Shown here piece by piece: positions 28,882 to 62,756 of a stretch of DNA of 64,000 nt; position 1 is the stretch's first letter, and every line of letters starts with the position of its first letter. Source of the stretch: Kudoa neothunni (Eukaryota; Animalia; Cnidaria); the NCBI GenBank assembly GCA_964304625.1, contig OZ199839.1:4389292-4453291 (forward strand). The letters run 5' to 3'. Both the position numbers and the translations under genes were made by a program. The notes under the pieces are model-generated. The model had not been told where the DNA came from, made no database searches, and saw only the letters and a program-made list of their open reading frames with translations.

Positions 28882-29670
28882 ATGGGAAATGCGACTGTGT
28901 TCAACCTGTCGGAAATATCAAATGATTTGGGTACAAAAATTTACTTTTGACAACTCTTAATCTGACTAAAGAAGAGATCAGGCACTGTTACAATAAATGC
29001 TTGAAAAGTATGCTCGATCATAAAGTTATTGCCGTTCCCACTGACACAATTTACGGAGTTGGCTGTATTCCATCCTCTGACATTGCTATCAACAAAATAT
29101 CAATGAAAGCTAGAGATTTAGATAAGCCATTAGCATTGTGCGTATCCGATTTCGAATCAATTTACAAGTAAAAATCTATCAAGTTACATACAAGTAATAG
29201 AACCTCCTATATAGATGGTCCGAGTGTAACTTAACACACGACGAACTTTCACTTTTCTTCCTGGAAAATGTACTCTCATATTCAAGCGTTCGTCGCTCTC
29301 TATAGTCATTAAATCCTGGAAATCAAACAATTGGCTTTCGAATACCTGAGGAGGATTTATCGTTAAGCTTTGCTCGCAATTACCCGAGAAATCGCTTGTG
29401 TTAACAAGCGCTAATATTAGCAATTCGATGAGTTCGCTTGTTCCTCAAGTTTATTAGACTTATTTTGTATTATCGGTGATATTTTTTAGGATTTTGAAAA
29501 ATTAAATGACGTATTGATGTTATTGTGGACAAAGGAAGTCCACTATCAGAGGATGGTTGTCGCCTAGGTTCAACTGTGATAGATATTTCAACGATCATCT
29601 CTTTACGATATTAAGAGAAGGTTCAAATTGCTCTCATTACAAGGAAATACTCACCAAGTTTAAAATATAA
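28882..29670 (+). CDS. YRDC: YrdC/Sua5 threonylcarbamoyl-AMP synthase, 4 exons, with five apparent frameshifts (sequence error or pseudogene)
   Basis: VIAVPTDTIYG, KARDLDKPL, LPGKCTLIFKR, LNPGNQTIGFRIP, LVLTSANIS, IDVIVDKG, CRLGSTVIDIS, ILREG appear in the correct order but in shifting frames. Confidence 0.85.
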
Positions 29671-30257
29671 ACAGATCTAACATTTTACCAGTAGAAATTA
29701 AAACAGCTTATTCTACTCAGTTGCGACGGTTGTTGTGGATCTTTTGTATTTTGGGTGGTTTCTTTTTGTTTCTCCGATATTATTTTAATAAATGTTCAAT
29801 TCTTGAATGGTAGACGTTCAATTGAAACTTGGTTTTCTGTAATTCCTTCCAATATATGCATTGATTGTCATGATGCACTTCCTAATTAATCATAAATTAA
29901 ACCTTAATACAATGAACAATATTATTAACTATTTAATCGAAGGTGTGAAAACTAATTTTTGAGAAATAGTGAATATTTTAAATAGTTAAATAAATGTTAT
30001 TCTATTTCAATTTTTTATAATTTTCTCAATTATTTTTAGCCCATCAGTTAACACTTTTATAAGTGCTGTATTTTCTATCACGCTCACTCAGACTCAGGAT
30101 AAACACACGCGGCCCGTTCAAGTCCGACTGCAATAGTATAGAGGTTGCTTAACAAGGCGGTGAAGCCGCCGCTAATTTATATATTATTTATAATCTCCAA
30201 CTATGAGCTAATGAGTTATTTTGTACACTTAATGTCATACATTATCTACGATGCTAA

Positions 30258-32233
30258 CCCATAGCGGGTTTTCGTTGCTTTTTCGGCTCTGGTATATGAC
30301 CGCCATAAAAACTTTCATTATTTTTAAAATTTTATTATTTTTTTCCCATCAATAATGAATGCATTTTTTATTTATTACTAAAGTATAATTATAGTTAATA
30401 ATGTATTTGTAAAGATATGATAATAAATAACTCATACCTTGTGCTTAGGTTATAATGCAACAAAAAATTATGATATAAGTCTCTTTGAAGAGTATTTTTG
30501 TAAATTTAGAAAATTATATTTAGTTGTATGATATAAATTCAATTTAAGAACTAAAGACTTATCTAAGATAAGTTATAACGGATGTAATGTGAAGCCATAA
30601 AAGCAACGAAGAACGACCGGCATGCTAAATCCCAATAATCCCACATTTGTTGCTTGAGAGATGAGGTATAGGAATTTGATCGACGCAGTTGATGAAATTG
30701 GTAATAATGATGATGAAATTAATTGCATCGATGTTGTAACATTACCCCCTGAAACAGTCGATATTTTAACGGACGAAGAAGAAAGTTTTGTCAGCCTAGA
30801 TTCAGACAATGTTGACATCAGGAATGTCCCCGAAGTTTGCGGGGAAGTTGAGATATTTTCAACATTAGATGATGGTCAGACTGCTGAGAACTTCAGTAGG
30901 CTAAGTGGAAAAATTCTTCATTCATCAAATTATCACCGATGCGGAAACTAATGTTTTTTCACAAAACAAAATGAATTGCCAACAAACGTTTCGCTCGAAA
31001 AATACGATTCACTTGAAGCATTTTATGGATTTTTTGATGAAAGTTTATTGATGCACATTGTTAAACAAAGTAATCTGTACGCTCGCCAGAAGAATGACCA
31101 TTCTTTCCACTTATCGTTAAAGGAACTAAAATCATTCATTGGTATTTGCTACTGTCTGGATATAATAAATTATCCCAACAACATATGTATTGGGAATCTG
31201 CAATGGACTCTGGAGTTGATATAGTCAGAAAATGCATGTCCTATAAACGCTTCAAGACTATAAAATCATATATTCATTTTAATAATAACGCCAATTTAGA
31301 TCCTGAAGATAAGCTCTTCAAACTTACACCAATAATAAAAAAACTGAATGAAAATTTTAAGAAATTTGGTATTTTCCATAATAACGTTTGTGTTGATGAA
31401 CAGATGGTTCCGTATACCGGTCACCACTCATGCAAATGTTTATGAGAGGAAAACCAATTCGGTTTGGTTTTAAGCAGTGGATGTTGACCTCTGCGGATGG
31501 TTTTGTGTATAGCTTTGACGTTTATACAGGCAAGTCAGCGAAATATGATAAATATTTTGGCCTCGGTGGCAGTGTTGTGCTGAATTTTGCGGACGATCTT
31601 AAGGATAAATCAAACGCTCATATTTATATGGACAATTTTTTTACATCCTATAAATTGTTCGTGAACTGAAGAAAGATCCCTCAAAGCAACCGGCACCGTG
31701 AGAACCAATCGTACTTCCAAATGCCCGCTTACAACAAATAAAGTGATGGAAAAATAAATTGTTAAACCATATTCGGAATATCGTAACATGTTTAATTAGC
31801 ATAAGTGACCATGAAAAACTACCAGAACATCGTCCCTATCCAAACTCCAAGCGTCATCATTGTGCAAAAAACCTTGCTTAATACCCATCCTGCAAAAAAG
31901 AAACGTAGATGTATAGTTTGTAAAAAAACTACAATACATTTATGTACGAATTGCCAATGTTATATGCACATAAAATGTTCAATAAAATTTCATAAGGCAT
32001 AATTATTTACAATTGTTCACTTTAAACCAGCTGTTATTTGTTTACCGCAAACACAACCTGCTACTGGAAATCGCACGTCGGTAGTTTTTCGTTGCTTTTT
32101 CGGCCAATACTAATTCAATTGTAATTCATTAAATATTTAATATTTCAAAAATCTATTGCATCAGTGTTAATTATTAATGATTTAATACATATATAAGTTA
32201 TAAATAAAATCTAAACATTGGACCCGTTATGGG
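30258..32233 (+). mobile_element. piggyBac element with frameshifted, internally deleted PGBD3-like transposase
   Basis: TIR CCCATA(G/A)CGGGT, flanks CTAA / TTAA. Internal direct repeat TTTTCGTTGCTTTTTCGGC near both ends. Fragments CVDEQMVPYTGHHS, MRGKPIRFGFKQW, IYMDNFFTSYKL, C-terminal RRCIVCKKTTIHLCTNCQCYMHIKCSIKFH. Confidence 0.92.
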
Positions 32234-32243
32234 TTAAATAATA

Positions 32244-35200
32244 GGTACATGCGTGTGGTAATGTCTATTGGCCCGGCAGATCAGTTTCACGATTTTGTAA
32301 TCTTTCAAGAGTAAAATTAGGATTTTAATTGCCTAACTGTTAAATTGCAACGTTTACGAACACATTTTTTAATATTCGAGTCGCTCAAGCTCAAGTGGGA
32401 ATTGTTACCGGCACAGCTTGATTATCGTTTTCAAATATTATATATTTAACTTATATTATATTTTTTTCGCCGAAATTTGAGAATAAATTGATCTGGTGAT
32501 CGCATCTAAATTAAACAGTGACGTTGAATTTTACGAACCTGTGTTTGTGTGTAGTGTGGTTATTCATACGCAATGAACAGCAACGAAAGTGGTGGAAGCA
32601 ACCATGATGTTAAAACTAACGAGAATAGTTTTTTCAACGTTGGTGATACGTTAATAGCTTTGAAGAGTTAAAGTGAAAATTGAACAGTTGGAATTACTCG
32701 ATAAATATACGATGTCCATATTAGATTGCAAAACCACTGAGAGTGGCCAAAAACGTTGTGATCGAGTGTTAAATCCATTATTAAAATATTATCAATTAAA
32801 ATTTTTCTGTATTCACCACGGAAAAAAGGTAAATCGTTTATTTTATTAATATTATTTTCATTTAAGGTTAATTATGTTTTGTCTTTAGAAATATTTTTAT
32901 TTAGTTGTTAAGTTCTTTATTGGTTTTATTATTTTAGAGAAAGCGATCAACTGGTCAACGTAATACGAACTCTTATTATAAAGGATGCCCAATGTTTTTA
33001 AGGTTTCTAATTGACGCAGACGGCAAAAAACTTGTGTTAAAATCTCTTAATTTATCACATAAATACGAGTCTCTTAGTTTACCCCAAAAATTTTTAGGAA
33101 GAAGGGAAATATGTTATATTGAAAAAGTTAAGAAACATTAAATATTCAATTAAATCCCATTCAGCCACACTTGATTTTTTGCTAACTCCAAAAAATAAAT
33201 CAAGTGTATTCATTGAAGTGCTAGAAGGTGGAAATAATTTTAAGAGTCTATTTTATCATGATTTAGACATGAAAAAATGCTTAACAGCTTACCCCGAAAT
33301 AATATTTGTTGTCGCCACATATAAATTATTATATTGTAGGGCTACAGTTTATTTTCTTGTGGTAATGGATGGAAGAGGAATGAGCGAGATAGTGGCAACA
33401 GGAATCCTCACTGAAGAAACAGAGGAAATACTATCAGGGTTTATTTAAACAATGTAAAAACGTAACCCAGTGATAGAAAACGAGACTAAAATTTTTATGA
33501 CAGATAAAGAAATGATGGAGCGAAAAGTTTGAAAAAATATTTCCCAAATGTTAACATTCAATTATGTCTTTATCATGTCTTAAAGGCATTTAATCGTGAA
33601 ATCAAAGTAGAGAAAATGAACATTAATTCTAAGGAAAAAGAAATTTCTCTATTTTATCTACAAAAAAATCTCATACGCCAAAAAATTTGAAGAATATAAT
33701 TCTATAAAAAACGATATAAGGATAACCTAGGAGAAAACGTTTATCGTTATTTTAGAAATAATTGGCATACAATCAAAGATGAATGGGTTATTGGTTTACG
33801 GAGATACGATGGAATGTTCCTAAATTTTAGCAATAACAGAATTGAAAGTGTCAATTCCAAAATGAAAAAAGTGATTCCATTATTTTCCTCTTTTGAATAA
33901 TTTTTCAAGAAATTTCTAGTTTACAAAAATACTTCAAGAATGGAGAAGGATAATAAGGCTGTTCAAGAAATTTTAAAGACATCTCAAAAATTTATGGATC
34001 GTGATATAATCGAGTGTTATAATTTTTTGACAAAATAGCCATTCCAAATGAATGTGCTAAAGTTCACCTATTGCTAGAAAACATCGTCGATGAAACTACT
34101 CCAGATGGTTTTAACGCGTCTACTAATGATAAATGTGATTGTCCATTTGGAATCAGCATGAATTTACCATGCTGCCACATATTTACATCTCGGAAAACGT
34201 GTAATCTTCCACTTTTTGATAAATCGTTGTGCTCTCAGAGATGGACGACAAATTACTTTATTGAAAATTCGAGATTAAAAGAAAATGTTTGTAAAAATAA
34301 TGATGTCGACTTTGAATGCGATTCGATTTCTTTCAGTTCCTTATCCAAAAATGTTCAATATTCAGAACAAAAAAAAATTCAATGAAGGTTCTAGATTGGT
34401 GAAAATTGTCGCTGCCAGAATCTCAGAAAAAACAGGTCCTGAATATAATTATTGGATTGATAAGCTGAAACAGTTAACGGAAGACAATGAAAATATTAAA
34501 AAAATTCCGCGAAACAAACTTAGCGATGATGACTCTATATTCTATATGTGAGGTCTCAACAACCTCAATCGAAAACATCACACTGTCTAGAAATGTTTTT
34601 CTATGTAATATAATGCAATATTAATTTTGATGTATTTAGATTCAGAATTACCTCAATGTCCTATAAACGAAAGTCAACAACTGTAAAACGGAATCCCTGC
34701 TAAAAGATTTATTCTAATTATAGGGAAAAATCAAATAATAATGAAAAAAACATTTACAATATCTGGTGAAAATAATAAAATTGCAAGTAATACAAAAGTT
34801 AATTATATTTTTGAAATAAAATGCAGAATTAATTCTGACCTCAAAATTCAATACAAAGGCCGCCCGAAAGGTTCATCTATGACTGTAATTGGTAAAAAAG
34901 ATCTAAAATACACATGAATTCGTTCATGAATTTAACTGAAATGCAAAAAATTTCGACTATATTATAAATTAGAAATTTTTTAAATCATTGATAGTTATGC
35001 CGAGCTGGTTTGTTGATAAAAATATTGCAAAAAAAGCTATGGTTAATAAAGAAAAAATCGATGTAAAGCACGTCGAGGTTTTTCCTAATAACGTAAGTGA
35101 CGCAATTCTTGACCAGAGGGTTTAAAATGATAAAATATTTCCTTATTTTACTGATGATACCATTAATAATATTATAACTATTATAAACAACGAAACTATT

Positions 35201-36358
35201 GTTGGTTATAGGTGCAGTATCTGTATAAACACGATTGGGAACATGGAATCACCTATAGGTTGTGATATTTGCTTAGAATGGAGTCATTTCAAATGTTAAA
35301 ATATTAGCATTAGCTCATATTCTAAGTATTGGTGTTGCGACGAATGTAAAAAATTATTCAAGAACAAATAACAGAACCAAATTTAAAACCTGAATAAAAA
35401 TATTTCTCCAACAAAAGAATAATCTTATTCGAATTATTTTCAAAATTATTTACAATTTTTCCTGAAAAAAATCCTTTGTATTGCAAGCAAAAATAACTCA
35501 CAATTAAATTATATTTTTAATTTCATGAATAATAGAATAAGTACTATTTCTTTTGCAAGCAGCACCGGTTATTTAAGTTAGATTTGTTCAAAACCTTCGT
35601 TTTATAAATTAATTTCTATAATGTCAATCAATTTCTATAATGATGATATATACGTAAAACCGTGGGGCGATGATTATGATGTCGTATATAATCAACATTA
35701 AAAAAGTTTCATGTTTAAGAATATACCAATATAATTAATATTTTTTCGAACTCGGAAGGAGATATTTACTTACTCATTCGAAATAGCATAAAGAGTTTAA
35801 TTTATTTAAATAGAAAGCACAATTTTGATAAAATTTCGATGCAAATTTTGTCAAGTTGCTTTACCGCTTAACTAAATGAATTTTTGTTTGTTATGCGTTA
35901 TGTAAACTAACCTACTGGTACGAATCAATATATCGAGATTGAATATAAATAAATTATCAGACTGATATAAATAATTATTAATTTGTTGTCCCAAATAGAA
36001 CTAAATATATCTCTACACTTATTTTTATATGCATTTTAAGGGGTAAACGTAACAAATAGTTATATCAACAGAATATGTAAATATGATGTAAATATTTCCA
36101 TAGAAAACTTAAGCTTTATTAATCCAATAGCTCATAAATGTTAGTTTATGTAAGAGTAGCATTTTCAAAGTCTAATAATGAAAATCTCGATTCTATCCGT
36201 GTCTAAATAGGTTTTTGAGTATTCTCTTTAATTAAACTTAATTGATAGATATACTTGTCATTAAAATGCTAATTAAAATATTAAATTTAATTGTATATCA
36301 ACTTAAAGTAACTTTATAGAGCATGCGATGCTAATCTGCCAGGCCAATAGTCACTTCC
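32244..36358 (+). mobile_element. Mutator-like (MULE) element with decayed ZSWIM3-type transposase, SWIM and PHD fingers
   Basis: 9-bp TSD TAAATAATA (32235-32243 and 36359-36367). TIR core TGTCTATTGGCCCGGCAGAT / ATCTGCCAGGCCAATAGTCA. Fragments YPEIIFVVATYKL...VMDGRGMSEIVA, FMTDKEMMER, QLCLYHVLKAF, SNNRIESVN, SWIM CDCPFGISMNLPCCHIF, PHD CSIC...GCDICLEWSHFKC...WCCDEC. Confidence 0.85.
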
Positions 36359-38751
36359 TAAATAATATTCTACATTATTGATCCTTTTCTATTTATTTTG
36401 TATTTTTGTTTGAAAAATTATTGGAAACTAAAATAGAAATAAAAATATATTTCGTTATATTTAAATTATAATATGTATGATAAAAAAGTATCACATAGAA
36501 CAGTCGAGAAAATTAAAAGTTTTAATAACGTAGTGATAACACTTTCAAATTTATTATAAAATCACCGTGACGGTGATAATCCACCTCAGGTAACGTTCAT
36601 ATAACAAAACATTGAGTTAGCTTTAGATTTTCACTATAATATATCTATAAATAATTTTTTAAAAATACACATAAAATGAACTGGAGAAATAATTTATGAA
36701 ATATCACAAAAATTAGTATTAAACAAAAATTAATTGTATTCAACTGATTTTGAATATCACAATAATTATTTTGATTATATAACTATAATAAATACCAGAT
36801 CTCTAAAATTAAATTGATTTTTAAAATTTCCATCTTAAGGGATGTTTTTTAAGGTGTTATTACAACCAACGTATAATCGATTCCAAGTAATTCTTAATAA
36901 TCATTATTTTATAAACGTTTCTCGTATTAATACTACTACTATTTAAATTGTTGTCGTTTTCTTATGAGCAGAAACATTTAAGTGGGTTAAGCACATCAGT
37001 TGAATATAATTGTTTCCAAGAATGAAATCATATCTAAGCAAAATTAATATTTGGGTATTAGATGATTCTATTTATTAAAACTTGAGTATTTATTTGTGAT
37101 TATATATTTATTACGTGGTCTTAACATAGTTATATATTGGGGATTAAATGTAAATAAAATGATCCATTAATATTTATTCTTATTTGAATAACTATGATTA
37201 ATGTGAGAGTTTAATTTTTGGATGTAAAATAATACGAATTAGGAGCATTATTAATACTCTTAATTTATGGAAAATGGTTATTTATGCTGTTCTTTAGAGT
37301 TAAAACATCGTTTTGAATTTCTTTATAATAAATAATCATACAAGAAACAATGCTGATTAACTGATTAAAACAAATATTGCAAATTTAAGCATAAGTTATG
37401 AACGAATATTTTTCTAGGGGATTTTATTCTGGATTTATATAACTAATTTGGACTTCTATTATATTTAGAGAAAAAAAAATATTTTAGCAATAATTCATTC
37501 ACTATTTCAAAATTACACGCTTTTTTATCATTGTTGGCACAAAAAGTTAATAATACCTAGAGATGAATTATAAATATACAATAAAATATTTTTTATATTA
37601 AGTGATTTTAAAATATGACATTGTTAAATCTAGAATTATGATTTCGCACAAAAAATCAGTTGTTAGACTCCTAATTTACCTACAAATGAGGAAACGGCCC
37701 ATATCAATCCGAGGAATACTAGGTATTGACATAAAGCTACATTGTCATCTTCCAATAAAAAGTCAATAGTATGTGTTAGGATAGAAATATAGATAGAAGT
37801 TGTCTATTGTTGGAATCCTCAAGGGATATTAAAATTAACACAAATACTCATAACCAATAAATAAAACTTCAAATATTTAATAATCATACATTATCCGAAT
37901 CGACGACACATTGAACTAACTGGTCCAAACTTTTATTTATATTTTTTTTCACAGAGTCTTTCTGAATGAAATTATTTCTGTAGACATTTATTTCTCTACT
38001 AATAGTTTCATTTTGACTCACACACTCTTCTATTTCAAGATATTGTTTTTCTAGGGCGTTTTCAAGGTATTCAACTAATAACTACGTAAAAATACAAAAT
38101 ATGGAGGTAATACTTCTTTTTAGCATTAAATCATTTTTCAATGGAATTATAATTCGTTTTTTGAATTTTTATTATTTTACATTATATTTTATGATGTATT
38201 CTTGTCGCTTTCGGAATAACAAAGTTAGCGTCCATTGATATAAATGTTACATGGTAAAAAATTTAATCAATCACTCATATCATAATCCAGCCTGGGTGAA
38301 ATATACGGTTTTCTGCATTCGAATAAATATCTTGTTGTATTATTGCAAGAAAAATGATTCGAATTTTCTAAATTTTGACTCACCTAACGATGACTCTAAG
38401 TTGTCAAGCTGCGACGTCTATCAATTAGAGGTGCCAATAAACCTTATTATAAACAATTAAGGAACAACCAGATCTCTTTAAATACCTGTTGTTATTACCA
38501 AACGGAACCCACTTTTGATTAATTCAATTAACGAATTCCATTTTTAGTCAAAAATTCTTACATTTGTTAAGCCTAGTTATTTTACGGTTACTTGGATTAA
38601 AATAATTTAATCAGACGCGACAATTTAAACAATAATGAATAAGAAAACGTGTCCAATATTTCTCCAAAGTGTGCATATTTTAACAGCTATCAACATCTGA
38701 CGTCAGCTGAAATTGAATAAAAATTAACACTACTGCACTTACCCCTTTTCG

Positions 38752-41700
38752 ATGAATTTATTAATAATATTTATAAATTTTGCTTTCATCGTATATTCCT
38801 ACAAAATACCTCCGCCAAGATACAAGAGGAATGCTGAGTTCGGTACCGGCACTAAGGCAAAACCACATATTGTTTTAATAACAGCCTCCGAATTGGTAAT
38901 CTCCAAAAATTGTACATATTGCATCTATCTTTATACTATATTAGGGATGGGATGATATAAGTCAACATGGTTCCCCACTTGCTCTAACTCCTAATTTGCA
39001 TACTCTAGCCAAACATGGAATTCATTTTAGTCATCACTATATTACACCCTGGGACTTTACCACCAGAGTTGAATTATATACTGGTGAATACGCCAGTCAT
39101 CAAGGTAATAATCATTTCTGATTTATGATACAGGTTTTTTGTTTAATTGAAAACCAAATTCAATTATTAAAACTGGGATCCTTATATTAAATTTCATGGG
39201 ATAAAAAGGCTTCCAACATAAAACATATATTTATGAATACTAAAAATAGCTTCGGGAATAAATTCCAATGTTTCTATGAACTTTATTGTTATCAATAATA
39301 ATTCAAAATTGATCTTTACATTTAAATATATCTATGACGAGTTGAATCGAATTTTTCTCCAGAGTAAAGTGAGGCTCTATTAAGAATATTTATTATGCCG
39401 TTAATTACAATTATTTATTTATAAACTAGTTTATGTGGCGTAATTTACTTTTAAATGAGTAAAGAAAGGCGTGAATACTTCCATTGCTTTTATCAGTGCG
39501 AGAAATAATCGTCTAAATAGGTCTATCCGAATAATTCAAATGAAATTGTTGAATCTTAATAAGTTTTAATCAGATTTTAGCCAACGTTTGTATTAACAAT
39601 AATCGCTCGCAAAATTTTCATTTTTATTTAAGTTTAACTTAATTTCAGAGGTAATTTACCATTTCTTTTCTAGGACTACAACACGGAAATATTACGAATG
39701 GCCAGCCAATTGGCTTGAATATAACTACAAAAATTTTACCGGAATACCTGAAAGAATTGGGTTACAACACTACGTTATTAGGAAAGTGGGGTTTAGGATT
39801 CTATAAGAAGCAGTTGACTCCAACGAATAAAGGGTTTAATTACTTTAAAGGATCGCTGGGATTCGATAGCATAGACTACTACAATTATACCAGTAAAGCA
39901 AGATATGAAGGTTACGATTTGTACGAGAACGAACAAGTAAATTATTTCTCAATATTTTTATGTACAAAATGTAAATTTAGCCATTTTACTCGAATGATGA
40001 ACAACATTTAACAGAGTTGTTGACTGATGAAGCCACCAAAATCATTCATAATCAAATAAACTGTACCAAGCCATTGTTTTTACATGTTTCCTTCCAATCT
40101 CCTCAATTCGCATCCACTACAAATAAACCACAAGTCCCTGACCATTGGTTGAAACCGTTCGAGGGCATATTTAATGACACTGATAGAACTGGGCATTCCG
40201 GTAGGTAAATTCAGTTGGCTTGAATATGATTTTATTCTAGCAATGGTTCTCTCATTGGACGTTGCGATCGGAAAAATTATGGATGCCTTGTCGGTTGCAA
40301 ATATTTTTGACGACACATTCTTCGTATTTCTCACCACCTCCACCTCTAAGTCTTGCTCAAGTGTTCATGCCGTTGGTTGTAACTATCCACTGAAAGGTGG
40401 CAAGGGAACCTATTGGGAAGGCGGAGTTCGTTCAATGGCGATGGTCTATTCCGGTGATATTACTACGCCCGGTAATAATCTTTCTTAGTTTAATTTTCTA
40501 ATCAAGTTTCTAGGAATAACAATTAAAGATACTATACATATCACTGATTGGATGCCAACCATTCTAAATTTAGCTTCCAAAGGACAGTCTTCAAATCTTT
40601 TGAGCACACTTCATGGTTTTGATATATCTAACATCATTTCCAAAAGTGAGAAATCCAAAAGAGAGTTTATTCTACATGGTTACGATCCTCTAGCGAGTAA
40701 GTTCTAATATCATTCAGTGGAATGTGTAAAAAAATATAGACAACAGTGGTGCTATTCGATTACGTGATTATAAACTTGTCATTAATCAGCAAATAGATGA
40801 GCGAAGCGACTGGACTAAATATTTTGCGTTTGATCGAAATAAAACAAGAAATCTTGAAATCCCAGGCTTTAGACCTAAATCAAACGCAAAACCAGACGTT
40901 GAATCGGTGATTTTGTGTGACAGTGGTTTTCCACACCCTTACTTACGACTGAGAGCTCCTCCATGCAATCCGTCGGAAAAACCTTGTCTTTTCAACATCC
41001 TCTGGGATCCGTGTGAGTATCACAATCTCGCGGACTTTTTACCAAAAACAGCTCATTATCTCTATGAAAACACAAAGATGATTCTAGATTCTGGTTATAT
41101 AAAAAAACCACTCTATCCAGAGTTCGATAATAAGTCGGATCCTAAAAATTTCAATAACACATGGGCACCTTGGATCCAATCAAACTTTGACAACAATAAA
41201 CTAAAATTAGAAAATCTCTCCAATCTATTGGAAGAAGATAAAATCATTATTCTTAATAATAAGATCCAGAAAAACAACAGTGCCAATGATTCATCCAAAT
41301 TTAGTAATATGACAGCTGGTACAGCTAGAACATCATCTGCAGCGAATGCTGAAAAAGATGCTTTTCCGTACCAGCTAATAAATGAAAACGAGCTAGACAA
41401 CTTCGGTCAAGATGGTGCTTCGGATAATTTTGGAAAGTACGGGAGTAATAAGATCTTGAAAATCAGCTGTGAAGAATTGGACTACTATAACTATACGATC
41501 GAATGTATTAGTGTTGCTAATTCTGCTGACAAAGATGGATCCTCTAATAATATATTTGATGGTTATGACGATCGGAAGAATATAGACTTGGTTAAACTTG
41601 GAACCTATGTGGAAAATATGACGGACAAAATATTACTGGATGACCAATTTAAACTAGATAATAATGACAATGTTTCCGCTCGCTCAAATGCGACGGATTT

Positions 41701-43893
41701 CTCTGAAAATGACCCGTTTAAACAGTCATTTAATAAGCTTATGGATAACGGCAATCAAAGCAACAGCCCAACTGATCTGACTGGTGGAAAAATCGAGAAA
41801 AATATAAGTGTTACTCCTTTCCAAAACATTACTCGAATTTCACCTGGAAATGAAACTCATCCTATTCCAGTAAATGTTGAAAGATTTAGCATAGATGAAG
41901 TAAACGAGAACTATTGTATTCGATTATTTGATTCACTGTCTACATTTAGAAACCAGAAAGATCCATGGATAAAAATGAAACGATTTCTTCAACCACCACT
42001 AATGCTCCGACCACTCCCAATGTAACGCATACAGTCGGCCAAGAAAGTAGTATTCTCATTATAATACGTTATCAAAATCTTATCTAATGTCTTTAGTTGA
42101 AAATAAAAACGAATCATTAGCAAATGACGAGATGAAGAAAAAACTGGAGAGTTCTTTTAAGATAGCAAAAGCTGAAGGATCAACTAAATTAATTGGTCCA
42201 TTCGACGAGAAAAACTCAACATTAAAACTGTTGACTAACGCTATCGCTGGAAATATTACTGATGAGAAGAAAGAAAATTATCTCAGCGAATTAAACACAG
42301 ATCAAAATAATCCTAATATCGACTGGCATTTGACATCGAAAGCTGTGAGTATAGACTTTTCTCCCAACGTGACACAAACTAATTGGACGACTATGGAACA
42401 TCCTAATTGGGAAAATAAAACAAATTATGGTTTGTCGAACTTCACGAAGATTGAAAAATTTTCAAATACGCGAACGAATTTTAGCAATTTTGGTGGTGAA
42501 GCAAGAAACATTCCAAGCGGGCCGCCTCCCGATCCCCAGGTTAAAAGTGATGTAAAGGCAATAGCCAATGCAAACAAGGGTGAAAATATCAATGTGAGTA
42601 CTCTCTCGTTAAATGAGTCACAGAAACCAAATTCAACCATCCAAAACACGGTCCAAAAACCAGAATACGGTCCAATAAACGCTCCAATCCATAATACTAC
42701 CAACAACACATCTCAGAAATCACTTATAAAAGATGGAGATTCATTTAGGTCGTTAGAAATAATTAACGAACCATTAGATCAAAATGCAACTCTGTGGAAA
42801 AATAAGTGTGATTGTGGCAATGGAGGTGTATCGTGCGATAAGTGTGCTGAGGCACCATCGAAAGATAAATCAGCCCTGATCAACAGTTTTGAAAAGTCAA
42901 AAAAACAGTAACAATCAGAATTTAGTCAACACTAACCGAGTTACTGGACAAAAAATTGACGGAATTCCATTCAGTGGCCAAATAGAAATGTCCAACAAAA
43001 AATTCAATGTAGAAGGTACTGTAATGGAAGACAGCCAAGGAAAAACTATCACTAATGGTGATTACTCAGTATCTTCCAGTAATGATAATATGATTGGAAT
43101 GAGTTTGTTGAAAAACGGAGGATACGACCCGAAACAACAAAATCATAATCCAGAGTTAGAGTTTATGGAATCATCTGCAAATCTCAAATTGACGCCACTC
43201 ACAAATGACCATTTCAAAAAACATACAAAACAAAATAAAACACGTATACTACGAACTAAAAAAGGATTGATAGAATTAGTTGGAGAGCTAGGTGATTCAA
43301 ACGAAGAAGATTCCACTCCTACTCCCAATAGCTCGGCTCCCAAAAACGAATCATCAGTTAGTAAAATAATTTCCAATTTAGAAAAACTGCTAGCTAACAG
43401 TGTTCCAACTGAAAACAACACCTTAGACAATATCAAAGATCTATTTAAATCTCGCATGATGGATATGCTTGCCAATCACCAGCTATCAGAAAATGCCACA
43501 ACTCTACCAAATAATGGCACAACCACTCTTAACAATAGCCAACCACTAGGTAATGAAAACAAAACAAATAGTTCTGTTTTGAGCAATGAGATCTCTGGCC
43601 AAAAGAAAACTTTCACTAATCCTCAACAACCTCCAAACACAAATGATGCCAAGAAGGATTCAATAACCATTAACGATAGTGGTGCTAAAACAAATCAAGT
43701 CGCTACATTGATTGCTATTATTCTTGCTGGGTTGATCGTGATCGGTATGGGTGTTGTAGCTGTAGTTGCTGTTGTTGCAAAATCGATAGACGAACGCTCG
43801 AAATCATCCAAATCAAAACTTTCCAAAGATAAACAACGTACCAGTTCTCCAAGAGCTCATCGCCTTAGAGAGAAAATACCTTTCAATACCTAA
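38752..43893 (+). CDS. Arylsulfatase B/I/J-like type I membrane protein, predicted catalytically inactive, with long Asn/Thr/Ser-rich stalk and C-terminal transmembrane helix
   Basis: Signal peptide MNLLIIFINFAFIVYS. KPHIVLITASELGWDDISQHGS...TPNLHTLAKHG...TPWDFTTRVELYTGEY...GLQH...LPEYLKELGYNTTLLGKWGLG...NYPLKGGKGTYWEGGVR...IHITDWMPT...CLFNILWDPCEYHNLA. About 9 exons. TM helix VATLIAIILAGLIVIGMGVVAVVAVVA followed by a basic tail. One +1 frameshift in an A7 run at about 42900. Confidence 0.87.
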
Positions 43894-45048: not shown

Positions 45049-47241
45049 AGATGGCTACTATGCAATTGCTAGAAAATTAATTTACAAATCTATAATAAAT
45101 AATGGCATCGTTTCTGATCCATTTAATTGATTTTTTACCTTTTTCAATTAGTTTTATCGCATAATTTTTGTCTTCAGCAATCATTTCTAAAAGATTCAAA
45201 TTCAATAATATTTTCCACTTTTTTTACGAATCTCCTGGAATATTCCCACAAATATCTAAACGTACACCAATCATTAAATTGAAGCACTTGCTAATGCAAA
45301 AATAAGCTTTTTATATTAAATTAGAGATTAAAATAAACAGTGATGACTAAAATTATCTCGATTTTTGGAATTGTCTGCATATGCTGATAAGTTGAAATAT
45401 TCCTAAAAGTATTGACCTAAAATGTATTCACTTAATGAAGGCAGAGGCTATTCGCACTGTAAATTTTAATCTCAATCTGTGCGCGTGCATACTCAGCGCG
45501 TTTTTAAATCGTCACGTCTTATTCGAAAGTTCGATGCAGATTTAATTATTTAGAATTTGCTATATATAGTTATTTTCGGCCCATTTTTTCGCTTTTAGGA
45601 TTGAGAAATAATTACATATAGTAAAACCCACAAGCAAAAATTCGCCGGTGCAAACGCAATGCACTTAACTATAATTAATTTTCTCTATAATCACGAAAAG
45701 ACGACAAATCTAAATTATAATAATATAATAAATAAAGCTAAATCAATTTCCAACTATGAGTTTTTGCTATTCTCTCTAGATAGAACAATCCATAATATAT
45801 AATATCGGTGATAATTCAACGCTATTTCCTTCAATTTGGTAAACTTCTCTTCTTTCTTTAAATTTTCCGCTGAGGAAGGATTGCACATCAGAAAATTAAT
45901 ATCTTGTTCAACAAGACTCTGAGTCTCTTAATTTCTCAATGAATATTGGTAATCCAGGATGCGTTTGATCAAAACAGCCGTAAAAATGACGATGGAAATT
46001 CTCGGCAGCATTGCGTTAGTTGTTAGATCAGTTCCATCCATCAGTCTATCGTACGCATTCCATGATAAATTTTGATACTTGTAATTTTGAATAAAATTTC
46101 CTTCGAAATAGTTAAAAAATGAAGATAATTCATTTATCTCAAGATTTTTGGATTTTTGCTTTAATTTTACAAATTCGTGTTTTAATGTATCAAGCGGTAC
46201 AAAGGCTAACAATGTAAAACACTTGATAAACAGGCGAAAATCAGAATCATCGCAATATCTGGTCTCCAAACCTAAATTTTGGATTTTCCCCCATATGCAT
46301 TGCCCAAAATGAAACAAACAATGAAATGTGTTGGAATGTTTTGATGCTTTTTAAAAGCATTGGAAGCGGGACGTTCAAAATCAAATATAATACTTGTGGG
46401 AACTTGAATTGAACGTTAGCCTTGTCTTTTAATATCAATAAAACCCTTTCATAGCTCTCTTGGAATTTATCAACCATTAGGACAAAAATCAACGGAAAAA
46501 TTCTACCAAATATTTTACCGTGGATCATGTATACTTGATAAAATTTGTTAGGAACCGCATTAAACGTACCATCAGATACCCACGTTTCGCAATTATTTAG
46601 GTGTACTATATTATTATCTGTTGTGAATATTATAATTCTATTGGTCGACTTGGACCCAGAATCATACAAACAAAACTGTCCTTGCATATGCGTAACAATG
46701 TTTTGTTTGCTTAAATCGATTTCCAAGTCCATAGTAACATAATTTCTCTTTCGAGAGTTCTGGATGTTTTTGTGAATATTCTTTGGGGAATTGTGGGTAT
46801 TTCACTTATTCTGTTTGTTGTAGTTTTAATTGAATAAATTTTGGAGGGTGGATAATGATTATTTTCAGCCAGTAATTTTACGTCACAGTAGAAAACCTTT
46901 TTATTTATTTCTTCATCAGAAACTGTACGGTCGTGATAGCCTCTTTTCTCGATGCTATCAATTTTATCGCTAAGCGTTGTCGATAATTGGCCCTTACATT
47001 TCCTGACGTCACATCTCCAATATTGTTATTCTTAGTGTAATCTTTAACATAAAAAAATCCCTCGTAAAGAATTTTATCGCTTCCGCGTTGTGTTTTTAAT
47101 GGAACGTACTTATTATTGGAATTATCCTTTCCCGTCATAGCCCTGTTTGTCAATTGTAGCATTGCGCTCGCGCAAACAGGGTTTTAGCCATCTCAAATCT
47201 AGCAAAACCTGAATATTTTTTACCGTTCTAGTAGCCACCTC
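45049..47241 (-). mobile_element. MULE element with frameshifted FLYWCH-MULE transposase
   Basis: KTQRGSDKILYEGFFYVKD (FLYWCH-like), WVSDGTFNAVPNKFYQVYMIHG...PLIFVLMVDKFQESY, FHFGQCIWGKIQNLGL, LLAFVP, LTTNA. Short imperfect TIR AG(A/G)TGGCTACTA; no TSD seen, so the ends are tentative. Confidence 0.8.
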
Positions 47242-47465: not shown

Positions 47466-50400
47466 TCATAACAATGACATTATTTTTTTGGAGATAGCCG
47501 TAGTTAACTCAGATAGGTTTGATCTTACAGTTAATCTCATAGTCTATAAAATATTCAGAGTTAAAGCAATAAATATTGACTTACAGCACTATCAATTTTC
47601 GTCTCAAGCCTTGTTATGCAACCAGCAACAAATGCCTGGCAGTAGAATGCGGATGCAGTTACAAAATTCATTGGATTAGGATCAATGCCATTGAGAATTT
47701 CCATATTTAGAGATTTTAACTATGTAAAAGTAAAACAACGTAAATATCAACAAATCAACCTTTTCAGTAATGTAGGCACTATCAAATACCCTGGAAGCTT
47801 CAAAAATCTCAATATTCTCAAGTTCAGGACTAAATCAAAGTGCAATTCAACATTAGGTCTAAACAAACATCATTCACGAATAGCTTACCTAGCCATATTA
47901 TTCCATATGTTAACAAAAATTGGAGAGTTCTATAGTGTATGGCATCATATAGTTGACCACACTGACCGGTAACATCAACGGTAGTATTTTCACGTTTTGT
48001 AAATCATTAGAAGACCTAACAGACCAATCAAAAATAAAGTTGAGATAAATTTATGTATACAACAAATGAATAGTGATGGTAACGCCCAAACTCAACGGTG
48101 AGTTGCACACAGATTGAAAATTAAAAGAACAGCCACCGGAGAATATTTTTGTGCAATCGGGAGTGAATGTCGAAAACAAAACTTCTACATAGTTGGTAGT
48201 TGGTGTTTGTTAAAGACTCATAATATATGCATTACCTTTCGATTCAGACGTAGAATAATTCACAACTTTTAAGTGAATATAAGGATCTGTTGATTCCAGG
48301 CGTATTTCATGAGATCCAACGCTCTGATTATATATAGAAGCCATTTTTACAGTCAATGATTTGTCTTCAAAGAGGGTTCCAGAGTTCGATGTCAGAAATC
48401 TATATTTAAAGAGAATACATCAGGTGCAACGAAACGACCAAATCATCAGTTAAAGCTTCGAAATTTTGTATATAGAAATATTCATCTTTTAGATCATATA
48501 ACTTGAATATTATTTATGTAACGCAACTTTACTAATTTATGGAAGAACTCACTTGAACAAAGTTTCTACATAATATAATATATTCAATTTAAGAATTTAT
48601 ATTGGAACTGAATAATACTCAAGTTTTTATGGTTTATAGATAAAGTATGAACGGGAAAACAACAGTGACCATTATTTTATTCAAAATACTCCTTCTCTAG
48701 ATAGAGGTTAAATGAAACCTAACTTACTGTTTAATATCTAAATCAGTAGTCTAAACATTTTTTGTCGACCCCCCTCCAGAGATGTTATTAAAAAAATTAA
48801 AATATTCTTAGCTTTTCGACTAGAACAAATACAAATATATGCACTATATCCCATTAATATTCTATTTCCAATATATAATAAAATGCAAAATTATATTGAT
48901 GAAAAAATATTATTTATTAACAATGTAACATCAAAATATATCGGAAAAATTTAAGATATTTGCAAATATCTATACAGATATATATAATCCAGCCATGCCA
49001 CGAAAAACAACTATATTAGAGAATTTACCACAGCGAATCTGTTTTTCGTCATAAATCATTCTCAATAGGTCTCCCCAAGTAGGGTCGCTTGTATATGATT
49101 ATAGTTACATAATTTTGCACTAATTAAATACAACGTCAGATTTTTTTATATTAAACTACATCGTATACATAGAGAATTTAATATTTACTCGTGGCTGTCT
49201 TTAAAAGTTAATAAGAATATCTTCATCTTTACCTTAAAATAATTTGACGTAGCTGGAGGTCGATTGAAGAGTTTTTGAAGTGTCCGCAGGGGTTGAAAGG
49301 ACAATTGCAATTTATTATAATTATTTTCGTAGCTTTTATAATTTTTATTCAAATCAATCTTAAAAATAAGACTTATCCTTCTTAGTCAATTAAATACTTA
49401 ATTTAAACCATCGTTATTGTTTTACATTCTGTTCATAACAATCAGTACTAATGATCCTTTAAATTTAAGAAAAATTTAACGCTAATTTTATATGAGCTGC
49501 AATGTCTCTACATTAATGAAATTAAATAATTAGGAAAATTGGAGATCAATTTTAACCTATAAAATAAAACACAAATATTATTGGGTAGTTTTAATTAATT
49601 TTATTAAATAATGTAGAATGGAGTAGAAAGATGGGAAGAATTATCTTAAAAGCCCGTCAAATTCAGTGGAATCTCTTAACGCGTATCGATCCTCTTTCCG
49701 ACCTCTAACTTAATTAACGACCACATTGGAGAGCCATTGCATAGAACGTAAGAAAAAAATTAATTATTTTAATTTTAATCAGCTTTAAAATTCCGATTTT
49801 ACTCTATTTAGACTTTCAGCTACCTGTCTAAGAATGGAGCATTGAGGATTTGTCCATATGAAGGTAGGGTTGGAGTGGTTGACATTCGTGGAGATGGGGC
49901 GTTTTCCTTGATAGATGCAAGTGCTACACAAAAATCACCTATGAAAATAAAACATCATAAAACATACTATTTGAGGATTCAACAAATTGCGTGGCTTTGG
50001 CAGACTCATCTCCGGATAGAAGATCAGTGGCACTAGATACGAGATTATCTTGTTGAATGCTTCTATCGGCACTCTCGATAATTTCATCTTCACATCCATC
50101 GCTCTCTGTGTATTCGAACACTGGCATTTCGCTCAATACTATAAAGGTGTTGAGTATTATGCGCCGGTAAAAAGAGTTCGTTACCCACAGACAGCATATT
50201 ATTATCTTTGGTGAGTAGTTGTCTGTATTCACATGCCCGTTGTTGAAGTTCGGTGTCAATATTTTGGGTGACAATGTTGTTGTTGAAAAACTATACACCA
50301 TAACATTACACTCAAAGCAAATGGCACACGTACGTCGGTGATTTGCTGCCTAAGAGTGGCTTGATTGAATGCCATTTTAGCCAGGGCAGTGAGTATAATA

Positions 50401-52423
50401 TTTTTTGTGCTAACACCATAAAAAGGAAACAACCCAATGACCAAAGAGTATTGGGATTGAGAGCTGAACGAGGTCTGTTTGCAAACGAGGTGGCCGTACT
50501 CACCGATAAGATACACGCCAAGTTTGGCGATATATTCGGAACTGTTGGGATGGTTGAGATAATTTATCAGAGTTTTGACCGAGTATTCTTGAATGTCTCT
50601 GTATTCGCAGACGGTTTGAGCAATTTTAAACCATACTTCTTCGCCGGCCAATTCTCTTCCATGGATCAGCACGTTTATCATGCTGTCGATGTACCATTTG
50701 GCATCGGAGATACTTTTGGAGGCAATAGCACAGATTTTGAGTGATAGTTCTTCCCTTATACAGAATTCGGCATTCATTAGAAATTTGATCATATTTTCCA
50801 CTATTTTTTTCGAGTTGGATAAATCTCCAACACTGTATATAACGGAAACAGCTTGTAGTCGAAGGCCGGAATTTTTTTCAGAAACGATCAAATCTGAAAG
50901 TCGCTGAGAGAAATCTTTGATAATTACTCGAAACGATGGAGTGTGCTTCATTTTGATTAAATTCTCGAGGAAAAGGAATCGATAGTTGGTTTCAGCGGAA
51001 GACAGCATTTTGGAGAGATAGTTGTACGCTTGACTCAAGCATTCCTCATTGACCGTTTTGGATGCAACAACGCTGACCGCTTCGAATTTAATAGCATTCA
51101 ATATGTTGGAATAATGGATTTTTTTGCTGGATGACTTGTTTGGAGCATGTGGGTTTTCCAGCGAGAAAATTAGTTGCAGCAACTTGGATAACGGTAACGT
51201 GGATTCGTTTGATGGATTTAACAACTGTAACAACTGCAATGATTTAATTATAGTCCAAGGGGATATAATATTGTAATAGCTCAACGGAGAAATGGACGAG
51301 ATTACACATAGCTAATAAATTATAGTTGCACTAAATCAATTTAACAATCTTTAAAACCTACCTTGAAAAGATGTTGAATGATGGTGGGAAACAAGAAAGA
51401 CAAATTGTCTCCATTCACAAGTGCACCTTCATATAAAATATTGGTTATAGGTAACAACATCATCTATCAAATCAAACTAATAGTAAACAACAAAAACAAA
51501 CCAACTTCTAAAAAAATACTTCGGAAGCTGAGGAGTACATTTTTAAAATCTTGTTAAAAATTTCAGGATATTTAGAAATGTATTGTTTATCGTGCTTAAT
51601 GAAAGCCAAATAACAACTTAAATACATTTGATATTCACTGTTTTCTTGAGGTCTGTGTGTTGAAGAAATTAGATAGTTAAATTAACAACAAAATTCATCA
51701 CATCAACGATAATTGTTTGTGTAATACCGGACTCAATTCATCAATCATATCCTCATTTATAACAAATGGTATAAAGTGGGTAGCCATCATTACACTGTAA
51801 TAATTCAACGAACATAAATCAGATGCCACATTATTGATTATAATATGATTCAAATCGCTATCCTCACTGCTCGAGAGTAGAGACAAAAACAAATATCCCT
51901 ATACATCATCACATAATCCAATATATATACAATGTAGAGATACGACAAATAAATGACAAAATATAATACAATTTGTTTTTCGGATTGCTTGGCGGATGCC
52001 AACAAGAACGCTGCTTCCGATTGTCCAATGTTTACTTCGTATCCAAGTAAAAATATAAGAACTAATTTGGCGATATATTTTTTCCGATGGTAACCATCAA
52101 TGTTTTTGTCCGCTATTTAAAAAAATTCATCATCAGTATGATAAACCACTTAAATATCTGTAATTGGTTGCATACTTCTAAATTTATTTCTTATATTTGC
52201 CAACTCTTTGTTTACACGTTTGACCTCTGCTTCTCTAGATTTACCTACGTACATATAAACTATCAGTATCAATGATGATGCACATACACAAACGAATATC
52301 AGTGATGAATTGGGTTAAACCTTTCATTTGATCTTTGGTGTTGAATGCGGCCGCCTCAACTTTACCTTCTACAACGCAAGCACATATAAAATACAGTGGT
52401 CGTTTTCAAACCAAAGTTTCCAT
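47466..52423 (-). CDS. AP2A: AP-2 complex subunit alpha (alpha-adaptin), multi-exon
   Basis: [35 protein letters not shown]...DGYHRKKYIAKL...EKQIGYLFLS; YYNIISPW; ETNYRFLFLE; IREELSLKICAIA; YLIGEYGHLV; appendage RFLTSNSGTLFED...PNPMNFV...GCITRLE...MRLTVRS, stop at 47466. The start is either 52423 or the internal ATG at 52327. One 1.4 kb intron at about 48400-49823. Confidence 0.93.
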
Positions 52424-60500: not shown

Positions 60501-62756
60501 AGGATAACGATCTGGGAGAATAAAGTGCAGAATAGACCAAAGTTCACGTAAATTGTTTTGTAGAGGGGTGCCAGTCATCAACAACCGATGACTAGAGTAG
60601 AAAGTCTGTAGAGTGATGTACAGAGAACTCTCCACATTCTTTAGTCGATGAGCCTCATCAACAATCAACGAAACCCAGTCAAATTGACCGATAAATTCTT
60701 TATCTTTGATAATCATCTCGTAAGTGGTAACTAAAACATGAAATTTTAACTGGAAATTATAGATGTTAAATTCTTGAGAAGCTTGTGATTCAGCTGTATT
60801 TTGATCGCTCCGGATTTTTTCAAACAAATCTGGATTGTCATCTGCATCATTATCGAACATGGTGTATTTTCTCATGTTTTTTCTACTCTCAGCATTGCCT
60901 GTATAACCAATAACAGTAAGTCCGGGGGCCCATTTTTGAAAGTGTGTCTTCCAACTTTCAACAGTGGACAATGGGACAACAATCAAATAAGGGCCACTGA
61001 TTTGGTAGGTATGATATAACGTTGATATGAAGGAGATAACCTGTACAGTTTTCCCAAGACCCATTTCATCTGCAAGAATAACGCTTTTCTTTCTGCAGAA
61101 GGAACTGGTCATCCAGTTAATTCCTTCAAGTTGATAGTCACGAAGTATATTACATGTGGTGTGAAGAGGTTGTATATTGTAGGATACCGGTGGATTTGTT
61201 TCATCTTCCAACTTAACATCTTCCAATTCAAATTTGGTGGACTCATTACAGTTACAGTGGGCAATGAAATCAGGAGTGTTATCAACTTTGTAAAACTTGA
61301 GATTTCCCATGCGTCTCAAATCCAACTGATAGTACATTTTAGATTTCTTCAAAAAGTATTCTCTGATTGCATTGTGAAACAGCTTGTGGATAAATGCCGC
61401 ATCCTCCCAAGTTGCGTCACTGCAGGGCAAATTATTCCAATGACATAGAAAATGCACTCCTTCAGATAACAACTCATCTAAATTGATGTCACTCGTCGAC
61501 TCGTACAATGAATACTGTTCTAAAGCAACGTTGCTGGGTGATATTGCTAACAGACAATCGAGTTTAGTGAATTCTTCAAGCACACTGTCTATTGCTTGAT
61601 TCTTATCGGTGACCATGCTTTGAGAATGTTCATCCATTAAACTTACTGGATCAACTGTACACGATGGATCAATATTGTTGTCTTGACAGAAATTTTGAAG
61701 TTTTTTGGTATTGGTAACACCCAAGTCCGTGAGACTTTTCTCCGTCTCCCAGCTACAATGAAGATAGGACTTGTCCTTCCATTTTATAAGAAATTGCATC
61801 ACATAGAGCTTGGAATCTTCTTGTTTGACCGTTTCCTTATTAGATATTAATTGATATTCATCTCCCGACATTACAGTATCTTCGATCGCTTCAATTTTCA
61901 ACACAGTAGTATCATCAACCAAAGGGATAAACGAATCATCCGCATGTTGCTTACTGCCATTTTCGTCCTGGAGGGGCAGATGGAGTTGGTGTATTTTACT
62001 ACCAATCAGACTGACAGCCCCAAATCTATAGTTTAAAACTTTGTCAATGAGAGGTTTCTTCGACGTTGAATAAGCCATATCATTGTATTTGGTTTCCATT
62101 CCAAACTGATTTATATCAAATTTTTTCGATGTAACATGTGTTGATTCACAAGATGGCAAGTGATCCTCATCACCACTGGCAGCAGGCTCATACTTGTAAA
62201 AGTAGTCATTCTCGTCGTATTCCTCTTCGGAAAACAACTCTTCTTCAGTGGTTGTATCACCATAGTCGACTTCACCGTAGGTGGAAGACTTTTTTTTCTT
62301 TTTGAATTTTATAGAAGGGCGTCGAGATTTGCCAAATGCGCTTGATATACTGCGTTTAGTTGAGGATGGTGTTTTGGTTTTCTTGGTGGATTTGGTAGCG
62401 GCCCGCTTTTTCGATCTTTTTGAACCAATCACAAATTCATCATCATCCGAGTCCAACTCATCTATTGGTTCGGAGACTTCACATTCACTCAAATAATATT
62501 CATCGTATTCCTCTTCATCGGGTGGCAAGGCTATTTGCGATGAACGTTCTTCATAAAGATCGTCGTCATCGTCGCCACAATCACTGATTTCATCACTGGT
62601 AAAATCATTAAAATCGTCAAACATATTTTCATTATTAGTATCGTCGGGGAGAGTAGTGCCCCCATTAGCAATAGGATCAATCGGTTGTTGATCAGAAGCA
62701 ATTGCATCTGATTCTGCTTGAAAAATTAACTCATCAACATCATTATTTACATCCAT
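57555..62756 (-). CDS. CHD1: Chromodomain-helicase-DNA-binding protein 1/2, 3 exons
   Basis: Tandem chromodomains (FLIKWKDKSYLHCSWE, FLCHWNNLPCSDATWE). SNF2 ATPase (LADEMGLGKT, VDEAHRLKN, TGTPLQN, QAQARAHRIGQ). SLIDE-like WKQKHDAELIVGVFFVGYGNW. C-terminal CHCT-like LLKPIKESI...IGHCI...MWNFVSRF. Two short introns near 58428-58463 and 58078-58124. Confidence 0.96.

Follow-up and report, generated by a model that had tools for sequence, protein, structure and literature searches.

Pseudo-sulfatase gene and its catalytic positions

The window analyzed here, a stretch of 64,000 nucleotides (nt) from the genome of Kudoa neothunni whose forward-strand coordinates are used throughout, contains a gene with a sulfatase domain in which the catalytic motifs have been replaced, referred to below as the pseudo-sulfatase gene (Table 1). 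Nine exons are separated by eight GT-AG introns of 40-50 nt, except for one of 569 nt. In agreement with the reading previously made from the sequence alone (the sequence-only reading), the signal peptide and splice frames were found intact: the introns keep the frame open for 1089 codons from position 38752, and the whole sulfatase domain is free of stops. The encoded order is a hydrophobic signal peptide, an RYKR site, the sulfatase domain (approximately residues 37-547), a stalk, one transmembrane helix and a basic tail. Single exons and already retrieved proteins served as database queries, and the joined model, with an X at the break in exon 9 described below, was used for translation and alignment only.

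Catalytic positions were set by alignment to human ARSB (1FSU) and 158 relatives. Eight of the 11 motif positions were replaced in the K. neothunni protein (Asp53->Ser, Asp54->Glu, Cys91->Asp, Pro93->Thr, His147->Gly, His242->Gln, Asp300->Thr, Asn301->Ser), while Arg95, Lys145 and Lys318 were unchanged. Both catalytic His and three of the four Ca ligands were consequently replaced, and the second Asp position (Asp54) was still acidic. Since the same positions were canonical in 143-155 of the 158 relatives (Cys in 145, both His in more than 150), the replaced motifs are not explained by alignment noise. All motifs quoted in the sequence-only reading were recovered (ASELG at 38884, DFTTR at 39053-39055 for its Asp codon, GKWGLG at 39781, QSPQ at 40095, TTST at 40333 and KGGK at 40393), and its claim of a kept scaffold with nearly all the catalytic machinery replaced was borne out. 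The survival of the Arg and of both Lys that it had also reported holds for K. neothunni, but the second Lys is Arg in the ortholog from Thelohanellus kitauei.

The same pattern was found in the four orthologs described in the next section. The [CS]-x-P-x-R signature (PS00523), which is the catalytic signature of the formylglycine (FGly)-dependent family S1 (PMC5066984), was absent, with DFTTR in K. neothunni and EFSSR, EFSSR, EFPTR and EFSTR in the orthologs, the Arg alone being kept. Across the five genes, SE, TD, TD, TE and TD stand in place of Ca-binding motif 1 ([DE][DQ]), and TST, TST, TST, EST and AST in place of Ca-binding motif 2 (D-[NHQ]-G). Instead of PS00149 (G-K-W-[HL]) and the second His, all five carry GKWG and Gln. 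The equivalents of Arg95 and Lys145 were basic in the five genes, and position 318 was K, K, K and R where covered. Among the 4058 S1 sulfatases of SulfAtlas the nucleophile is only Cys or Ser, and the positions of Asp300 and His242 are 99% conserved (PMC5066984). In ARSB, binding of the FGly residue falls to Arg95, Lys145 and His147 and that of the sulfate to Ca2+, His242, Lys318 and Lys145; Arg95 is buried and salt-bridged to the Ca-binding aspartates (PMC4014121). Judged by these residues, the protein is a descendant of S1 sulfatases that fails the tests for an active S1 member, and FGly sulfatase activity by any described route cannot be expected of it in K. neothunni.

Table 1. Window coordinates of the pseudo-sulfatase gene and its main features.
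Feature	Position	Strand	Basis
Exon 1: signal peptide, furin-like site (RYKR), ASEL in the first beta strand	38752..38895	+	gene model, alignment
ASEL: Ser and Glu codons at Asp53/Asp54 positions	38887-38892	+	
Exon 2: PWDFTTR	38945..39104	+	aligned to 1FSU
Exon 2: Asp at Cys/formylglycine position	39053-39055	+	
Exon 2: retained Arg95 equivalent	39065-39067	+	
Exon 3: GKWGLG	39674..39936	+	PF00884, E 4e-9
Exon 3: retained Lys145 equivalent	39784-39786	+	
Exon 3: Gly at His147 position	39790-39792	+	
Exon 4: QSPQ	39981..40200	+	alignment
Exon 4: Gln at His242 position	40104-40106	+	
Exon 5: TTSTS	40241..40471	+	alignment
Exon 5: Thr and Ser at Asp300/Asn301 positions	40336-40341	+	
Exon 5: myxozoan-specific Cys pair	40354-40356, 40378-40380	+	
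Exon 5: retained Lys318 equivalent	40402-40404	+	
Exon 6: HITDW structural motif	40514..40696	+	
Exon 7: C-terminal sulfatase subdomain, four conserved Cys (to ~41179), then start of N-rich stalk	40740..41899	+	
Exon 8: Thr-rich mucin-like stalk segment	41950..42046	+	introns on both sides also in ortholog L002
Exon 9: stalk with conserved blocks, transmembrane helix, tail, stop; frame change inside	42097..43893	+	
Frame change by A7 run (42899-42905), premature stop (42909-42911)	42880..42911	+	
Transmembrane helix	43702..43779	+	Kyte-Doolittle (KD) 3.0; conserved in L002 and L004
Basic cytoplasmic tail, 37 residues, SPR..R.R motif, stop codon	43780..43893	+	

The family assignment was supported by profile and structure matches. 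The locus matched PF00884 in the genome profile search (E 8.6e-15), and 1FSU was the best PDB match for exons 3 and 5 and for exons 4-5 of the ortholog L003, and the second best for exon 2. The N-terminal half of the T. kitauei protein keeps the sulfatase fold (Atlas TM 0.84), its best Foldseek match being 1FSU (E 5e-6). The ARSB-family ancestry proposed earlier was accordingly supported as ARSB/I/J-type; the nearest relative by tree path was a Hydra ARSJ-like protein, without support and in one tree, and no paralog (ARSB, ARSI or ARSJ) was assigned. With the ARSB/I/J group the myxozoan gene has in common the fold and the motifs GWDD, TG, GKW, NYPL.G.K..WEGG, HITDW and the C-terminal CLFNI..DPCE. 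It differs from that group in the absence of the Cys/Ser nucleophile and of CxPxR, in the replacement of both His and of three of the four Ca ligands, and in the presence of a new Cys pair and of a stalk of ~810 residues followed by a transmembrane helix and a tail.

Orthologs, membrane anchor and the break in exon 9

Exon searches recovered four further copies: L002 (Logan SRR31175926; complete, 1373 residues), L003 (SRR33849685; domain nearly complete), L004 from T. kitauei (GCA_000827895.1; L004:5943-10180, 1353 residues) and L008 (ERR9890981; N-terminal half). At NCBI, the T. kitauei ortholog is annotated as two genes, a 179-residue 'Arylsulfatase I' and an adjacent one of 1143 residues, with a start lacking a signal peptide, whereas a model with introns of 21-23 nt yields a single protein of 1353 residues with a hydrophobic N-terminus. 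The protein collections searched yielded no ortholog of full length. Intron positions within the domain were largely common to the orthologs. The introns of L004 and L008 were 20-23 nt long, as is typical of myxobolids (PMC13644364), and L002 was syntenic with the window, having both the Sua5 gene and the head-to-head neighbor. The five myxozoan genes formed one clade (support 99-100), with domain identities of 43-77%. An annotated Sulfatase of M. honghuensis (EVM0003451.1), compared by annotation only, has a T. kitauei 'Arylsulfatase B' as its best match; both the T. kitauei and the M. honghuensis genes are annotated as ordinary arylsulfatases, and no mention of a dead site or of a membrane anchor was found for either.

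Approximate NG86 ratios of nonsynonymous to synonymous substitution rates (dN/dS) were 0.07-0.21 in six of the seven measurable pairs and 0.40 in the other, three pairs being saturated. The gene is thus under purifying selection, which agrees with the earlier reading of an intact gene, and at the level of the family these ratios argue against pseudogene decay, an alternative that was therefore discarded. The FGly position was Glu in the four orthologs and Asp in K. neothunni, i.e. acidic in all five; Gly147, Gln242, Ser301, the following Thr-Ser and the new Cys pair were invariant, while the Asp300 position varied among Thr, Glu and Ala. Because the orthologs have these site residues in common (Gly147, Gln242, Ser301, the Cys pair and Glu), the dead state arose before the Kudoa-like lineage and the myxobolids diverged and has persisted in both.

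Regarding the C-terminal half, ~810 residues separate the domain from the transmembrane helix. Glycosylation sequons exceeded composition-matched shuffles in the three full-length genes (39 vs 20 in K. neothunni, p<0.001; 31 vs 21 and 17 vs 11 in the others). The stalk had been described as NxS/T-rich and of low complexity; the sequon excess agrees with the first part, but the stalk is not low-complexity alone, since short blocks are conserved among orthologs, some of them reaching T. kitauei. The transmembrane helix and the SPR..R.R tail motif were conserved as well. For the stalk no Pfam or Atlas family match and no internal repeat were found, and no tyrosine or dileucine sorting motif conserved among the tails was seen by eye. 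The possibility that stalk and transmembrane helix belong to a separate gene was rejected, as exon 7 runs from the domain into the stalk and both L002 and L004 are continuous.

The type I membrane architecture inferred previously was found in one frame, from signal peptide through sequon-rich ectodomain and transmembrane helix to basic tail, in L002 and L004, but is interrupted in the K. neothunni assembly. All parts are encoded there in the order predicted, but not in a single reading frame up to the transmembrane helix: exon 9 terminates at 42909-42911, after 1089 residues, and the last 337 codons, which include the helix and the tail, lie past the break in a different frame. The shift point falls within 42880-42908, adjoining a run of seven A, upstream of the helix. 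Tiny introns were discarded as its cause, given that the 11- and 18-nt GT-AG options run into stops and that those of 61 and 67 nt would remove blocks conserved in L002.

A homopolymer sequencing or assembly error is the most likely explanation of the break, as judged from the part beyond it, which is as conserved as the part ahead (43% vs 44% identity to L002) and free of stops over the 337 codons, and from the two complete orthologs, which read through the region in one frame. The assembly was built on ~7x HiFi coverage and has a quality value (QV) of 48.5 (PMC12239612). A real frame change in K. neothunni, giving a secreted form without anchor or marking a gene that begins to decay, would accommodate the stop present in the assembly, and errors are rare at a QV of 48.5, averaging about one in 70 kb (PMC12239612); yet the conservation beyond the break, its position at a homopolymer in an assembly of such coverage and the unbroken orthologs make this highly improbable. 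Even if real, the change would leave the family-level reading as it is.

The origin of the locus was also considered. The assembly comprises 40,260,978 bases in 4 contigs, and the GC content of the window is ~30%; the published description gives 40.2 Mb, an N50 of 12.0 Mb, three chromosomes plus the mitochondrion, a TAAACC telomere, 30.4% GC and introns of 49 nt (PMC12239612). A (TAAACC)n telomere-like array was located at the end of the contig that holds the window (G000:C2:12039536-12040069). The myxozoan-like parasite surmised from the sequence alone agrees with K. neothunni in the tiny introns, the ~30% GC and the TAAACC array. Host contamination was rejected on the basis of intron size, 30% GC, synteny with L002 and a clade separate from fish ARSI. 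The T. kitauei ortholog and the TAAACC array led to the rejection of a nematode origin.

Sulfation genes and the possible role of the protein

The pseudo-sulfatase locus was the only match in the K. neothunni genome both to PF00884 and to a canonical ARSB-like query. SUMF1/FGE was not found, there being no match in the genome to PF03781 or to two approximate FGE motif patterns; the same search method recovered a Sua5 exon of 54 residues. The loss of the FGly machinery suggested earlier is in line with these searches, which yielded neither SUMF1 nor an intact sulfatase. That SUMF1 and every active sulfatase have been lost is the simplest reading, although empty searches of a single genome do not prove it. 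An ATP sulfurylase/PAPS synthase (G000:C2:5015031-5015744) and an intact galactose-3-O-sulfotransferase, with an open reading frame (ORF) of 432 residues (G000:C3:9379096-9380238), were present, and because both have been retained the parasite can probably make its own sulfated galactose. Three other sulfotransferase Pfams, of the glycosaminoglycan (GAG) type, had no match in the genome, one of the searches being made without positive control, and thus gave no sign of GAG sulfation. On this gene content, the parasite seems to add sulfate but to be incapable of removing it.

In order to integrate these results, several readings of the function were weighed. The one preferred here, with a probability of about 0.52, is that this single-copy gene of myxozoans encodes a pseudo-sulfatase built as a type I membrane glycoprotein, whose head binds at the surface without catalysis, its pocket being plugged by the protein itself and its cleft reshaped. 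The ARSB/I/J-type head would be held ~800 residues off the membrane by the N-glycosylated stalk. The fixed Asp/Glu would occupy the place of the FGly-sulfate ester, the side chain of Glu91 reaching approximately the site taken by the sulfate in the FGly-sulfate intermediate, and would pair with the retained Arg and Lys, so that the sulfate pocket is filled from within as in a permanently sulfated enzyme. Such pairing of the carboxylate at position 91, deduced from known geometry, would explain why the Arg and Lys have been retained, and the carboxylate would repel an incoming sulfate. Binding would instead take place through the surrounding cleft, reshaped by the His->Gly and His->Gln changes and by the new disulfide loop, and the bound partner may be a glycan or a protein of an opposing surface, which could belong to the parasite itself (its cells or its spore envelope) just as well as to the host. 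As four other myxozoan genomes preserve this design, the protein is probably a non-enzymatic surface binder, and we infer for its head a role as recognition or adhesion module. Conservation in one copy is more readily reconciled with a housekeeping role at the surface, or with a ligand that is itself conserved, than with a factor of host specificity.

Several observations weigh against this preferred reading. The transmembrane helix is out of frame in the K. neothunni assembly, and the plugged pocket rests on alignment and on the known geometry of ARSB. Moreover, dS is near saturation, which makes the dN/dS values rough, and conservation at the replaced positions (6 of 8 invariant or conservative) did not significantly exceed the domain background of 49%, so that selection on the rebuilt site itself is suggested, not shown.

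The sequence-only reading had favored an old site converted into a sulfate-reading lectin pocket that grips host GAGs or sulfomucins, and thus a host-recognition adhesin. The Arg95, Lys145 and Lys318 equivalents, basic wherever covered, would suit such a pocket, as would the closest structural relative being the GalNAc-4-sulfatase ARSB, the crystallization of Cys->Ser sulfatase mutants with substrate (according to PDB titles), and the binding of sulfated glycans by sperm ARSA (PMC7827414); since the genome had no GAG-type sulfotransferase match in the searches above, one of them without positive control, a GAG ligand would be host-derived. Nothing tested supported either a sulfate-binding pocket or a host-derived ligand, however. 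The place of the sulfate is taken by a fixed carboxylate, His242 and His147 have been lost together with three Ca ligands, and the net charge of the domain in the three full orthologs (-5, +4 and -4) reveals no conserved basic surplus. In addition, the single-copy gene has been conserved in lineages whose hosts differ, the PAPS synthase and the intact galactose-3-O-sulfotransferase may provide a self ligand, and similar dead sulfatases exist in free-living animals. Taken together, the lectin pocket appears possible but rather doubtful. A re-tooled enzyme, in which the Asp/Glu would serve as nucleophile, acid/base or metal ligand of an FGE-independent surface hydrolase or transferase, was considered unlikely. 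Other members of the alkaline phosphatase superfamily have Ser or Thr nucleophiles, the nucleophile position is acidic in the five orthologs and the second Asp position stays acidic, the remaining metal positions are mostly O-donors (Ser/Thr), the Gly, Gln and Ser replacements are invariant, and SUMF1 loss would favor FGE-free chemistry; but catalysis is hard to square with an Asp/Glu swap at the nucleophile and with Thr, Glu or Ala at the 99%-conserved Asp300 position, neither catalytic His is left, and no publication on an enzyme of this kind was found.

A location inside the cell, with a structural or scaffolding task in the secretory pathway (in Golgi, lysosome or the vesicles that form polar capsules), would accord with the lysosomal or ER/Golgi location of the ancestral enzymes. 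Capsule assembly uses GAGs, and sulfatase domains were reported in two of the four capsule proteomes compared (PMC5566210). This placement is improbable given a stalk of ~800 residues with the sequon excess typical of surface proteins and the tails, in which no conserved sorting motif was noticed. A broader proposal, in which myxozoans have lost FGly chemistry altogether and their last sulfatase is a stalked receptor whose Glu/Asp mimics the sulfated intermediate, reads fish or annelid glycans at invasion and belongs to an overlooked class of anchored pseudo-sulfatases also present in bryozoans, is speculative and considered doubtful as a whole. The closest precedent for such a surface binder is sperm-surface ARSA (SLIP1), a sulfatase reported to bind sulfated glycans at the cell surface (PMC7827414); ARSA, however, is an intact soluble moonlighting enzyme that binds sulfated zona glycans, while the myxozoan protein has lost the chemistry and has its own anchor.

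The membrane-anchored pseudo-sulfatases of myxozoans constitute a real and conserved family that is apparently undescribed. In the literature searched, which covered few subscription papers, no sulfatase pseudoenzyme was described as a dedicated membrane receptor, no paper linked myxozoans and arylsulfatases, and none relevant dealt with natural non-catalytic sulfatases; in the preprint on the S. molnari genome there is no mention of sulfatases. Most ancestral genes have been lost in myxozoans, yet Kudoa and the distant Thelohanellus have both kept this one after the loss of catalysis and, in the K. neothunni genome at least, with its activator missing; retention in such gene-poor organisms points to an important non-enzymatic job. 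To our knowledge, the molecular basis of host attachment and recognition by myxozoans is poorly known, and a single-copy, conserved and probably surface-exposed protein is a concrete candidate for it, as well as a possible cross-species marker or vaccine antigen in fish farming.

Degenerate relatives and genomic neighborhood

Among ~160 ARSB/I/J-like matches, a few proteins of free-living animals had also lost the active site. The bryozoan 'arylsulfatase J-like' protein of Watersipora subatra (XP_067951666.1) lacks the Cys, Lys145, both His, Asp300 and Asn301. Like the myxozoan protein it has His242->Gln, Asp300->Thr and Asn301->Ser, and it ends in a hydrophobic tail resembling those of glycosylphosphatidylinositol (GPI)-anchored proteins, being a second candidate for an anchored pseudo-sulfatase. 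In the snail Batillaria (KAK7506885.1) the Cys and both His are lost and GKWGLG and SES are found, and in the sandfly Sergentomyia (GAB0091259.1) the Cys is lost. Further degenerate ARSB-like proteins were P0132 and P0002 (both Batillaria attramentaria), P0052 (Sergentomyia) and P0102; the second domain of P0002 has an Asp near the Cys position (PLDGPSR) and its other motifs intact. XP_067951666.1, KAK7506885.1 and GAB0091259.1, annotated as arylsulfatases or hypothetical proteins, have Gly or Ser at the FGly position and no stalk, whereas Asp/Glu at that position and the long stalk were, among the ~160 matches, seen only in myxozoans.

Watersipora and the myxozoans grouped with a support of 99 under a simple model and of 84 under a mixture model with the site columns removed, and approximately unbiased (AU) tests rejected neither this grouping nor one with the snail protein, so that the resemblance may reflect either one old clade or convergence. 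Since free-living animals also carry dead sulfatases, the loss of sulfatase catalysis is not tied to parasitism. The bryozoan, snail and sandfly cases suggest that 'arylsulfatase-like' annotations conceal more dead sulfatases.

Upstream of the pseudo-sulfatase, a Sua5/YrdC gene (28926-29604) was syntenic with L002. Head-to-head with it lies a small gene on the minus strand of the window (29789-38081), next to the pseudo-sulfatase; its counterpart in L002 is compact, and here it has a gap of ~8 kb between the matching exons, in which piggyBac-like (~30.6-31.9 kb) and Mutator-like element (MULE)-like (~32.6-34.7 kb) remnants were recognized by eye. Downstream, a frameshifted MULE-like transposase remnant was recognized by eye on the minus strand (45928-47183), with no Pfam match at 0.01. 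The window also contains a single-ORF pyruvate kinase (15321-16904), an adaptin subunit (50256-51284) and a CHD1-type remodeler (58428-62756). At 4121-5469, Cys-rich and Ser/Tyr-rich ORFs are followed by a WSC domain (E 2e-20), which may correspond to a surface carbohydrate-binding protein.

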